Positions 32,074 to 40,038 of a stretch of 64,000 nt of DNA are shown here, one piece after another. The stretch is from Macrostomum lignano (Eukaryota). Below the pieces are notes generated by a model, which saw only the letters and a program-made list of their open reading frames with translations, made no database searches and had not been told where the DNA came from. The translations under genes and the position numbers were made by a program. The stretch is taken from positions 124,001-188,000 of the forward strand of contig NIVC01000001.1 of assembly GCA_002269645.1 (NCBI GenBank), read 5' to 3'. Every line of letters begins with the position of its first letter. Position 1 is the first letter of the stretch.

Positions 32074-35000
32074 TCACACCTGACTGGTGCCCTCGGTTTC
32101 GTCGGCCGCCTCCCCGATGACCTCCGCCGCCACAGCCGACGACGCGTTAGTTGAATTGGCCGAGTCCTGGCGCACCGCCCGCGCCAGGTGCGCCTCCACG
32201 GCTGGCCAGCTGAACCGCTGAGCCTCCAGCAGAGGTGTGAAGCCCCACCTATCCGGCTCGCGTGGCGACAGGCCACAGACGTCGGTGAGGAATCTCACGG
32301 TGGCGAGGTGACCCTCGGAGGCGGCGATGTGCAGCGCCGTTCTCTGGTCGTAGTCCTTCAGCTGCATGCTGTAGCCGCGCAGGTAGGCCCGACGCAGAGC
32401 GGCGACATCGTTGTGAAATGCGGCGTAGAAAATTGTCAGGGCCTCGTGAGCCGACGCTTCGTATGGCTTCACGCAGGGGTCCAGCTTATCTGTTGAGCTG
32501 GGCTTCAGGCGGCCTTCGAAGTTGTGGAAATTGAATCGGTTGACCAGCTCCTGTGGGATTGATTTAAACACACAGTGAACAAGTCAAGGTCATTTTAAGA
32601 ATCTCTTCAAGGCCGTAGAGAAAGCTACTCGTGTTTGTTGATCGTGGGAGCCCGGCTCGCCCTTGTCCTTTCTCGGTGTCGTTTTTGCTCCCCCCCCTTG
32701 CTGGGTATTGGTTGGTCCTCCCCCCTCGTTTTCCTGCCCCGCCAGCGCCGCGGTTTAAGGGTTGGCTGGGGTGGCCGCCCTCCTCTGCACCGGCTCGTGT
32801 CCTGAGGTCCCCTGTCTACTTAAGTAGCGGCCCCTTCTGATTGGACAGCTCCTTTTGCTAGTCTTTCCCTCCTCGGAGCATCCCCTTAGTTTGGTCTAAC
32901 TCTGTGTATAAGAGCCCCCCGCTTTTCCCCCGTGCTTGGCTTAGATAGGTTTTTACCACAGACGCAAACTCACTGACTACAAGGTAAAACCTATCTAAGT
33001 AATGCTTTTCAAGGACTAAGTTATTAATAGATCGGTCTCCAACTTTTGTAGTTTCCCGTCCTTAGTTATTAAGTAGTCCCTGGGAGCGAACTCTCGCACT
33101 GGGGTCAGACGTCCGAGCAGTGAGCTATAGCTACTCAGAGGGTTCCCTTCCCATGCTGTCTGTCGCCCCACCCCACCGGCGGCCAGGAGGCCTTAAATTT
33201 AAGAAGCTTAAGTTCCCCACTTTCAAGTTCGAATCCCAAGTGCTATATTTAAAATCACATCAAGATCGAATCAAGGAGGTAAATCACGTCAAGGCCGAAT
33301 TCAATGGTTATTTTTAGAATCACGTCAAGGCCGAATGAAGGGCTATTTTTAGAATCACGTCAAGGCCGAATCCAGAGCTATTTTTAGAATCACGTCAAGG
33401 CCGAATCGAGAGCTATTTTTAGAATCACGTCAAGGCCGAATCCAGGAGGCTATATTTAGAGCCATGTCTCACAGAAAGCCAATTTCAGATCACTGCATGG
33501 TGGAATCTCCACCTCGAATTTCAGGTGAAATCCCGAAAGCTATTTTCGGAATCACTTCACGATGGAACTGAAAGCCTATAATAGGCTGTCTATTTATAAG
33601 TAACTGGGCCCTATCGTGTTGTATGGCATGCAAAACGTTGAGTTTAAAGCCTAAAATGACTAGTTAGCTACAGCTCTTAAAAATTGTCTCATTCTGTTTT
33701 TCAACTATGTCACCTGGTACACCAAGACAAAGTTATTACCTGACAAAATCTCACAGCCTTGGCTGGATTCGAAAGCTTATCAAGTGCCGGCGAGTACATA
33801 CAGAATCCGCACACCCCTGGAACCACCAGCTGGAGACAGCCGGAGATGGCCGATTTGGCTGGCAGGCCAACTTGAAAAGCGAACTGGCCGGAGAAGTCGT
33901 ACATGCCCGTTGAGCTCATCAGAGAGAGTGTCGAACGAACCGATTGTGGCGACATGACGCACTGGTTTGTGACAGGGCACACGCCGGAATTGGCCAGTGT
34001 GGCCGCCATCAGCGAGCCGGACTCGCAGTTAGTTTCTATGCTGCACATCTGTAGCATATTTACCGTAATTGAAATACGCTTGCCATTTATAGAAAACCGT
34101 TGCAAACAAGTGGCTATTTTTAGAAACAAAGACGAAATTTTACCAGGCTACTCGTGTTTTTTAGAAACAAAGATGAATGTTCACGTGGCTATTTTTAGAA
34201 ACAGTGTTGAATGTTCATGCAACTAGTTTTAGAAACAGTGATGAATTTTCATGTATCTATTTTTAGAAACAGTGTTGAATGTTCATGTAGCTATTTTTAG
34301 TAACAGTAATGATGAATGTTCATGCAGCTATTTTTAGAAACAGTGATGAATTTTCATGTAGCTATTTTTAGAAACAGTGGTGAATGTTCGTGTAGCTATT
34401 TCTAGAAAAAAAGAATTTTTGCTAGTCACAAAGGCCGAACCTGAAAGTAAAAATCCAGCGTCTCGGCCAGTGAAGAGTCGGCTGGAAAGCACTTGTTCTC
34501 GCGCAGGATGTGCCCGATGGCCACGTTTCGATCCGAGGAGCTTCTCTCCGATAGAAACCTAGCGGGTTGCGGTTTAGTGAAGGATGGTCGTTGTCAAATG
34601 ATGATCGGGTTAGAGAAAGCTTAAAATGAGAAAAACTCCCCATTGACCATCTCACCCCTGTCACATCCACCATCACATCAAATCCCATATTCTCACTACT
34701 GCACACCTACCAATCCTCAGCCACCTAACTCCCAGTCAACACCATTCCAACCAAGAGAAAGTAAGGTACTTACGCGGCATTGTTAAATCCCACATATTCG
34801 GAACCGGCAAATTCTTTGTACCTGGAGATTAGCTGAGGAAAAATTTGAGCTACCAAACCTTTAGTATAAGAGTAATAAACGAACGAAAATGGTACTGATT
34901 TTGGTAGTAACTAGTCTTTACAGTACGTTCTGGCTACTCAGACAAAACTTTTTTGTAAAAAAGACGAATGGATTCGGTATGCCATCACTCAGAACCGATT

Positions 35001-38000: not shown

Positions 38001-40038
38001 GCCCTAGAATGTCTCAATGCAAGGCATGTACATCCATGAGCCTTGGGAGTTGGCCCTAGAATGTCTCAATGCAAGGCATGTACATCCATGAGCCTTGGGA
38101 GTTGGCCCTAGAATGTCTCAATGCAAGGCATGTACATCCATGAGCCTTGGGAGTTGGCCCTAGAATGTCTCAATGCAAGGCATGTACATCCATGAGCCTT
38201 GGGAGTTGGCCCTAGAATATCTCAATGCAAGGCATGTACATCAATGAGCCTTGGGAGTTGGCCCTAGAATATCTCAATGCAAGACATGTACATCCATGAG
38301 CCTTGGGAGTTGGCCCTAGAATGTCTCAATGCAAGGCATGTACATCCATGAGCCTTGGGAGTTGGCCCTAGAATGTCTCAATGCAAGGCATGTACATCCA
38401 TGAGCCTTGGGAGTTGGCCCTAGAATGTCTCAATGCAAGGCATGTACATCAATGAGCCTTGGGAGTTGGCCCTAGAATGTCTCAATGCAAGGCATGTACA
38501 TCCATGAGCCTTGGGAGTTGGCCCTAGAATGTCTCAATGCAAGGCATGTACATCCATGAGCCTTGGGAGTTGGCCCTAGAATGTCTCAATGCAAGGCATG
38601 TACATCCATGAGCCTTGGGAGTTGGCCCTAGAATATCTCAATGCAAGACATGTACATCCATGAGCCTTGGGAGTTGGCCCTAGAATGTCTCAATGCAAGG
38701 CATGTACATCCATGAGCCTTGGGAGTTGGCCCTAGAATGTCTCAATGCAAGGCATGTACATCCATGAGCCTTGGGAGTTGGCCCTAGAATGTCTCAATGC
38801 AAGGCATGTACACTCCATGAGCCTTGGGAGTTGGCCCTAGAATGTCTCAATGCAAGGCATGTACATCCATGAGCCATGGGAGTTGGCCCTAGAATATCTC
38901 AATGCAAGACATGTACATCCATGAGCCTTGGGAGTTGGCCCTAGAATGTCTCAATGCAAGGCATGTACATCCATGAGCCTTGGGAGTTGGCCCTAGAATA
39001 TCTCAATGCAAGGCATGTACATCAATGAGCCTTGGGAGTTGGCCCTAGAATGTCTCAATGCAAGGCATGTACATCCATGAGCCTTGGGAGTTGGCCCTAG
39101 AATGTCTCAATGCAAGGCATGTACATCCATGAGCCTTGGGAGTTGGCCCTAGAATGTCTCAATGCAAGGCATGTACATCCATGAGCCTTGGGAGTTGGCC
39201 CTAGAATGTCTCAATGCAAGGCATGTACATCCATGAGCCTTGGGAGTTGGCCCTAGAATGTCTCAATGCAAGGCATGTACATCCATGAGCCTTGGGAGTT
39301 GGCCCTAGAATATCTCAATGCAAGACATGTACATCCATGAGCCTTGGGAGTTGGCCCTAGAATGTCTCAATGCAAGGCATGTACATCCATGAGCCTTGGG
39401 AGTTGGCCCTAGAATGTCTCAATGCAAGGCATGTACATCCATGAGCCTTGGGAGTTGGCCCTAGAATGTCTCAATGCAAGGCATGTACACTCCATGTGCT
39501 TTGGGAGTTGGCCCTAGAATGTCTCAATGCAAGGCATGTACATCCATGAGCCTTAAGAGTTGGCCCTAGAATATCTCAATGCAAGGCATGTACATCCATG
39601 AGCCTTGGGAGTTGGCCCTAGAATGTCTCAATGCAAGGCATGTACATCCATGAGCCTTGGGAGTTGGCCCTAGAATGTCTCAATGCAAGGCATGTACATC
39701 CATGAGCCTTGAGAGTTGGCCCTAGAATGTCTCAATGCAAGGCATGTACATCCATGAGCCTTAAGAGTTGGCCCTAGAATATCTCAATGCAAGGCATGTA
39801 CACTCCATGTGCCTTGGGAGTTGGGAGTCACACTATTAATATTACAAGCCATACAGCTACTCTCTCTCACCTGCTGGAATCTGTTCATGTCCACCTTGTC
39901 CGAGTCCTCGTCCCGCAGCAGGTCGAACACGAAGTCTTCCATTCGAACGCAGCGATCGATTGACAGCGAAGATCCATAGGACCTGCGCAGGGCGTAGAGC
40001 TGCAGCTGCTTTGGTACAGGTCCGCTGGCTGCGGCCAT
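32074..40038 (-). CDS. GLS: Glutaminase-like protein with C-terminal ankyrin repeats, predicted catalytically impaired, about 584 aa
   Basis: Exons 40038-39871, 37638-37484, 36284-36075, 36004-35838, 35226-35135, 34832-34774, 34558-34441, 34048-33740, 32550-32074 total 1755 nt, in frame. Motifs: [84 protein letters not shown] further upstream exon is possible. Confidence 0.93.
35232..35800. repeat. (GATA)n microsatellite filling a glutaminase-gene intron
   Basis: On the sense strand (TATC)n runs directly into the TTGCAG acceptor at 35227. Confidence 0.98.
36325..36615. repeat. About 22-bp pyrimidine-rich minisatellite
   Basis: Unit CTATCTGCCACTCCTACCATCT with variants. Confidence 0.85.
36824..37460. 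repeat. Alternating 15/16-bp minisatellite (31-bp dimer)
   Basis: ATGAGACTCCAGCCT / ATGAGACTCCAGCCCC. Confidence 0.95.
37722..39822. repeat. 52-bp minisatellite, about 40 copies, glutaminase-gene intron
   Basis: Unit CATCCATGAGCCTTGGGAGTTGGCCCTAGAATGTCTCAATGCAAGGCATGTA; period 52 measured. Confidence 0.97.

Follow-up and report, generated by a model that had tools for sequence, protein, structure and literature searches.

A nine-exon glutaminase-like gene of Macrostomum lignano without the catalytic Ser/Lys dyad: a probable pseudoenzyme of the GLS family

A 64,000-nucleotide stretch of the genome of the free-living flatworm Macrostomum lignano (assembly GCA_002269645.1, contig NIVC01000001.1, positions 124,001 to 188,000 of the forward strand), referred to in its full length as the window, was analyzed for a glutaminase-like gene which lies on its minus strand at window positions 40038-32074 and whose product has lost residues essential for glutaminase catalysis. 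The nine exons of this gene join into a coding sequence (CDS) of 1755 nt, comprising 584 codons and a TGA, and all eight introns (16 splice sites) are of the GT...AG kind, with neither internal stop nor frameshift in the CDS. The model was joined after the open segments across the region had been located and their junctions inspected, and it reproduced the coordinates and exon count of the initial annotation, which had described nine in-frame exons with canonical splice sites and no stops. The marks by which a pseudogene is recognized, namely intron loss, stops and frameshifts, are not seen in a gene with eight GT-AG introns and an open reading frame. The features of the gene are given below in window coordinates.

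39871..40038, minus strand: exon 1, opened by the ATG at 40038 and coding residues 1-56, with a short N-terminal leader and the first part of the EF-hand-like domain
37484..37638, minus strand: exon 2, from residue 57 through the second base of codon 108, within the EF-hand-like domain, supported by homology
36075..36284, minus strand: exon 3, running from the last part of the EF-hand-like domain into the catalytic domain, with Tyr155 as the counterpart of human Tyr249
35838..36004, minus strand: exon 4, degenerate S-x-x-K motif and altered activation loop
35953..35967, minus strand: motif codons Q191-A192-S193-Q194-F195, CAG GCG TCT CAG TTT
35135..35226, minus strand: exon 5, holding the Gly242 codon
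35201..35203, minus strand: Gly242 codon GGC, in place of Asn335, which binds the alpha-carboxylate of the substrate with its side chain
34774..34832, minus strand: exon 6, aligned without gaps to family sequence of the type FDYVMQFLNKMAGNEY
34441..34558, minus strand: exon 7, FLSE (Glu288 equivalent to Glu381), DRN (Asn295 equivalent to Asn388), DFYFQ (Tyr321 equivalent to Tyr414)
33740..34048, minus strand: exon 8, GMYDFSG (Tyr373 equivalent to Tyr466), LPAKSAISG, VRFCQ
32074..32550, minus strand: exon 9, linker, ankyrin repeats, acidic and Ser-rich tail ending T-S-Q-V, TGA at 32076-32074

The affiliation of the encoded protein with the animal GLS family can be deciphered from its domains, its homologs and its predicted fold. 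The Pfam Glutaminase domain PF04960, which has a serine-dependent beta-lactamase-like fold, was matched over residues 150-437 with 303 bits (cut-off 27), covering profile positions 1-286 of 286, and EF-hand_14 (residues 34-128) and Ank_2/Ank_4 (residues 466-537) complete the metazoan layout of EF-hand-like domain, catalytic domain and C-terminal ankyrin repeats. Among proteins of solved structure, human GLS2 and GLS were the best matches (E ~1e-147; aligned residues 31-571), and the likeness to human GLS (KGA/GAC) and GLS2 (LGA/GAB) amounts to ~45% identity over 540 residues with a common architecture and a common predicted fold. The protein differs from the human enzymes in its short N-terminal leader (~32 residues), and the gene, with its nine exons, from human GLS, which has roughly double that exon number. 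Two UniProt entries of M. lignano correspond to the gene: A0A1I8IAW9 (labelled P0002), 100% identical over the aligned residues, and A0A1I8JE34 (P0001), a near-identical copy in which 4 of 471 aligned residues differ (99% identical) and the reading frame is open over those 471 residues of a partial model. Two near-identical copies are to be expected because duplicated blocks of >=95% identity make up 180 Mb in the sequenced DV1 line (PMC5730564). Superposition of a predicted structure on human GLS, a check proposed by the initial annotation, was carried out with the AlphaFold model of P0002, the product of the same gene (mean predicted local distance difference test (pLDDT) score 75.5); it matched the fold of the human GLS catalytic domains with a target-normalised template modelling (TM) score of 0.85-0.86 and a probability of 1.00.

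Within this well-preserved frame, the active site is altered at its most critical positions. In the alignment to human GLS2, the motif FCLQSCVKPLTYA (F-C-L-Q-S-C-V-K-P-L-T-Y-A) and the PHNPMVNAGA stretch are paired with altered M. lignano segments; the codons at 35970-35953 of the minus strand, within the motif segment at 35976-35941, read M-Q-A-S-Q-F in place of the family signature F-x-x-Q-S-x-x-K-P. The acyl-enzyme nucleophile Ser286 is thereby replaced by Ala192 (GCG), the general base Lys289 by Phe195 (TTT) and Asn335 by Gly242 (GGC), bearing out both departures from the glutaminase signature described by the initial annotation. Two further positions, Val484 (Ile) and Gly483 (Ala), are also changed with respect to the human enzyme. 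The equivalents of Tyr249, Gln285, Glu381, Asn388, Tyr414 and Tyr466, together with the Lys481-Ser482 pair, are retained in the alignment, and the former six and the ankyrin tail (the latter by Pfam) are those that had been reported as kept. The active-site signature accordingly reads Y-Q-A-F-G-E-N-Y-Y-K-S-I, where Y-Q-S-K-N-E-N-Y-Y-K-S-V is found in 113 of 184 aligned domains. Among 192 matches to the Ser/Lys motif pattern, from 238 homologs retrieved, Ser...Lys is carried by 189, and Ala...Phe solely by the two database copies of the M. lignano gene (P0001 and P0002). The activation loop, GLR[FY]NKL[FS]LNE in canonical glutaminases, is heavily altered in the M. lignano protein. A mutually exclusive alternative exon 4 or 5 bearing the canonical motif (Q-S-x-x-K-P) was sought and rejected, none being present anywhere in the 64-kb window, which likewise holds no second glutaminase gene.

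Residues essential to a competent glutaminase (EC 3.5.1.2) are thus lost in an otherwise intact homolog, as is characteristic of a pseudoenzyme. In human KGA, Ser286 and Lys289 constitute the catalytic dyad, S286A, K289A, Y249A and Y466A each strongly reduce activity, and ND2 of Asn335 is a hydrogen-bond donor to the ligand carboxylate (PMC4929687, Table 2 for the last). The description of the protein as catalytically dead is well founded because human KGA becomes much less active when either Ser286 or Lys289 is replaced by Ala, and we predict with high confidence that glutamine hydrolysis by the family mechanism is absent.

The public models of the gene differ from the nine-exon model. Both P0001 and P0002 begin at exon 3, hence lack exon 1, and each contains an intron read-through (17 residues in P0002, 33 in P0001), that of P0002 running past the exon-5 donor at 35134 (35075-35134), where the AlphaFold pLDDT falls below 50. 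The nine-exon model aligns to the family without the gaps seen in these models. At its 5' end, an in-frame stop (40047-40045) stands directly upstream of the ATG; exon 1 ends in the donor CAG/gtgaga, and exon 2 is bounded by the acceptor ctgacag/TTG and the donor CAG/gtgagc (slashes mark the exon borders). For exon 8 an alternative in-frame donor, GCT/gtgaga, would shorten the exon to 33755 at the cost of VRFCQ; this upstream donor is used in both P0001 and P0002, and homology favours the downstream one. Tandem arrays surround and interrupt the gene: a 14-bp unit repeated 30 times (40053-40467) ends 15 nt upstream of the ATG, intron 1 contains a 52-bp unit x 40 (37721-39824), intron 2 a 31-bp unit x 20 (36828-37459), and intron 4 is filled by (ATAG) x 143 (35232-35806), adjoining the exon with the Gly242 codon. 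These repeats probably account for the missing exons 1-2 of the public models and may be the reason why the gene was filtered from the GenBank annotation.

Whether the gene has been maintained was approached through its conservation and composition. Invariant columns were defined from 17 non-redundant canonical protostome glutaminases of mutual identity <80%, and 112 of the 126 columns (89%) are kept by the dead paralog, the 14 changed ones including Ser286, Lys289, Asn335, Phe318 and Asn319. In a leave-one-out control, a Ser/Lys-bearing M. lignano paralog (P0023, described below) keeps 126 of 141 invariant columns (89%) and changes 15, so flatworm glutaminases are divergent in general. The match to the family consensus by conservation bin is 0.89/0.62/0.37/0.17 for the dead paralog and 0.89/0.66/0.34/0.19 for P0023; the values being alike, the dead paralog has obeyed the site constraints of the family as well as P0023 has. 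Its GC content at third codon positions (GC3) is 0.77, the neighbouring genes having a GC3 of 0.60-0.83 and its own introns a GC content of 0.27-0.52, with one 70-nt intron at 0.63. The initial annotation had interpreted the gene as a maintained, catalytically dead or re-purposed glutaminase. The intact gene, the loss of the dyad and Asn335 and the dead site stand on firm ground, the last through the KGA mutagenesis; its maintenance is plausible, with indirect support from the conservation profile, GC3 and the second copy.

Canonical glutaminases were recovered elsewhere in the genome, as the initial annotation had suggested be looked for. BOX15_Mlig006689g2 (P0023) and Mlig026033g1 (P0039) are Ser/Lys-bearing and keep Q-S-V-S-K-P, and a third paralog, A0A1I8HHN6 (P0494), is a partial model without the motif region; all of P0023, P0039 and P0494 keep N-S-G-A, unlike the dead paralog. 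M. lignano possesses at least two GLS lineages besides the dead paralog. These paralogs have the same architecture as the dead protein and are 43-46% identical to it and 55% to each other. The gene of P0023 (NIVC01000857.1; L005 3001-5502) has two exons and one GC-AG intron. An intron position common to P0023 and the dead paralog was considered and rejected, the P0023 intron lying 8 codons from intron 3 of the dead gene. In P0023 itself, the catalytic-site position of Tyr249 is occupied by a Cys (V-A-N-C-I-P-Q-L). The paralog identities and the different gene structure argue that the split between the M. lignano GLS lineages is not recent. In a neighbour-joining tree, the dead paralog falls inside bilaterian GLS, with no firm sister group; dating of the duplication by this tree was abandoned, as long branches dominate the placement.

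Loss of the Ser and/or Lys is not restricted to M. lignano. An exhaustive scan yielded many further PF04960 homologs, unannotated ones, whose S-x-x-K motif is degenerate (proteins P0276, P0304, P0314, P0336/P0390, P0364 and others; loci L001-L004), among them the following.

Oopsacas minuta (glass sponge), KAI6653764: Q-A-C-I-N
Romanomermis culicivorax (nematode), A0A915LB80: Q-S-G-F-A
Sphaerothecum destruens (ichthyosporean): Q-A-L-C-M
"Q-A-x-x-N" group: intron-poor Tara Oceans (marine metagenome) scaffolds
Second domains of tandem glutaminases of 1000-1300 amino acids: inactive-looking
644-amino-acid protein on a 2.1-kb contig from run SRR23162813 (Logan): Ala and Phe in place of the dyad, as in the M. 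lignano protein

The listed homologs other than the tandem glutaminases keep most binding residues and are 35-45% identical to the M. lignano protein. The degenerate homologs look like independent losses because the M. lignano protein lies closest, by distance, to canonical bilaterian enzymes and not to any of them. The SRR23162813 protein is sister to the M. lignano protein in 49 of 200 bootstraps, leaving room for a distant kinship of the two; the GC3 of its gene is 0.47, unlike that of M. lignano. Taken together, these proteins look like a recurrent, overlooked and undescribed class of dead glutaminases across eukaryotes. Full-text literature searches returned no paper describing a pseudoenzyme of the glutaminase family, the results being glutamine amidotransferases and PDX proteins; by these searches, a pseudoenzyme of the GLS family is of a kind not yet described.

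The remainder of the window holds several other features, listed here with their strand and nature.

46972-48372, minus strand: two large exons belonging to an inward-rectifier potassium channel, matched by the Pfam domains IRK (transmembrane part, 136 bits, T-I-G-Y-G filter present) and IRK_C (220 bits); the exons are split by a 21-bp tandem array (47538-48053)
55699-56544, plus strand: single open reading frame of 281 amino acids, weakly matched by the C-terminal hexokinase domain alone (PF03727, 54 bits), perhaps a hexokinase-like gene that is partial or has diverged
61196-61588 and 62750-63148, minus strand: glycoside hydrolase family 1 exons (beta-glucosidase/klotho-like), 83 and 185 bits
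5730-6188, minus strand: weak, below-threshold match to the Band 3/SLC4 cytoplasmic domain
57804-58148, plus strand: weak, below-threshold match to a reverse transcriptase fragment

The glutaminase-like locus is probably a non-catalytic paralog of the mitochondrial-type animal GLS glutaminases that has been retained for a non-catalytic role, and selection for such a role is proposed here with moderate confidence from the conservation and composition described above. Several observations weigh against this interpretation. The conservation profile integrates the whole history of the lineage and is compatible with a recent loss of function; no ortholog above about 52-58% identity was found outside the two M. 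lignano entries, either with the full-length protein, 174 amino acids around the motifs and a 262-amino-acid C-terminal part as queries or by an exhaustive HMMER scan (5.8 billion clusters in scope, 1.84 billion representatives for the HMMER scan); and exact-match contig-index look-up of P0001, P0002 and the exon-9 open reading frame gave no transcript or genomic records. In the neighbour-joining tree the protein has a longer branch than either canonical M. lignano paralog, its activation loop has diverged strongly and no longer contains the invariant Phe318 and Asn319, and AlphaFold models the surroundings of the Tyr466 loop with low confidence, the underlying alignment having just 37 sequences. 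The same missing orthologs and transcript records, the long branch and the 14 changed family-invariant residues, activation loop included, would be accounted for by a relic, i.e. a paralog which lost catalysis after duplication and is now unexpressed or neutral, without having acquired a stop or frameshift as yet. To these may be added the absence of the gene from the GenBank Mlig_3_7 proteome, in which three homology searches gave no NCBI-sourced match. However, that absence was rejected as a sign of missing expression and says little, because the Mlig_3_7 annotation removed transcripts overlapping repeats (PMC5730564) and the introns of the gene hold large tandem arrays. The Ser/Lys-bearing paralog has moreover lost invariant residues to at least the same degree, all 584 codons and 16 splice sites remain intact with a second copy open over its aligned length, and GC3 has not relaxed toward the intron composition. 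Lys to Phe requires three base changes, hence the site was remodelled long ago, while the rest of the protein stayed conserved. On balance we regard a relic as possible but unlikely.

Retention of amidohydrolase activity by another route is far less plausible. Ser193, at +1 of the lost nucleophile (Q-A-S-Q-F), might serve as a nucleophile with Tyr373/Lys388 as the base, perhaps on another substrate, and the equivalents of Tyr249, Tyr466 and the K-S motif (Lys481-Ser482) are indeed kept. The Ser and Lys of the S-x-x-K helix in the glutaminase fold are separated by one helical turn and both look into the pocket, which the +1 residue does not, and from such general structural knowledge Ser193 is expected to point away from the pocket. 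Furthermore, the base position has no Lys, Asn335 is lost too, and K289A alone cripples human KGA (PMC4929687). An artefact, whether an error of sequencing or assembly or a wrongly joined gene model, would be suggested by a genome that is repeat-rich and partly duplicated (PMC5730564) and by public models that differ at three splice choices. But GCG, TTT and GGC are 1, 3 and 2 base changes away from any Ser (TCN), Lys and Asn codon, so that the three replacements need at least six substitutions in three codons of two exons; the same replacements occur in two independent gene copies in UniProt, and the disputed splice choices lie elsewhere without touching the replaced codons. The number of base changes and the agreement of both database copies therefore lead us to hold a sequencing error excluded, and an artefact of any such kind is barely conceivable. 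The retained, non-catalytic paralog is the interpretation pursued in what follows.

Candidate roles for such a paralog may be drawn from its preserved parts. Glutamine, glutamate or a related ligand could be bound in the remodelled pocket, a candidate role because six ligand-contacting side chains remain. Alternatively, the ankyrin repeats and the PDZ-ligand-like C-terminus might make the protein a scaffold: the terminal T-S-Q-V (32077-32088, minus strand) fits the class I PDZ-ligand pattern, a three-residue motif that may arise by chance, and an [ST]-x-[VLI] C-terminus is present in 0 of 116 full-length canonical protostome homologs. Human GLS2 is known to engage PDZ partners via its ESMV terminus (PMC10705333) and to bind Rac1 independently of catalysis (PMC4749555). 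Modulation of the catalytic paralogs by co-assembly is a further candidate role. Dead paralogs that regulate active enzymes are exemplified by the plant pseudoenzyme PDX1.2 and the trypanosomatid "prozymes", which resemble the present case in that the enzyme has to oligomerise and its active paralogs are accompanied by a dead one; the analogy is one of possible mechanism only. The activity of GLS is reported to depend on its assembly into tetramers and filaments (PMC9949068). As a speculative extension to which we accord little likelihood, the dead paralog would join the catalytic M. lignano glutaminases in mixed tetramers or filaments and tune or cap their activity upon Gln/Glu binding, the sponge, nematode and protist dead homologs being the same trick reinvented. 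The altered activation loop, which belongs to the tetramer interface, would neither help nor exclude the idea of a regulatory subunit.

Overall, glutaminases are among the best-studied metabolic enzymes, and yet a pseudoenzyme form is undescribed in the literature searched. UniProt names both P0001 and P0002 "glutaminase" despite the dead site, and as a consequence of that label metabolic reconstructions of M. lignano would count an enzyme which is almost certainly not one. If mixed assembly were true, the protein would represent a regulatory subunit in the manner of a "prozyme", serving an enzyme that has to polymerise in order to be catalytic. If expressed, it would provide a natural GLS with a "ligand pocket without chemistry" in a regeneration model amenable to RNA interference and transgenesis, and thereby a way to test the non-enzymatic roles of GLS that are suspected for human GLS2. 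The interest of the gene would rise further if its expression were confirmed or if the scattered dead homologs proved to share a role.

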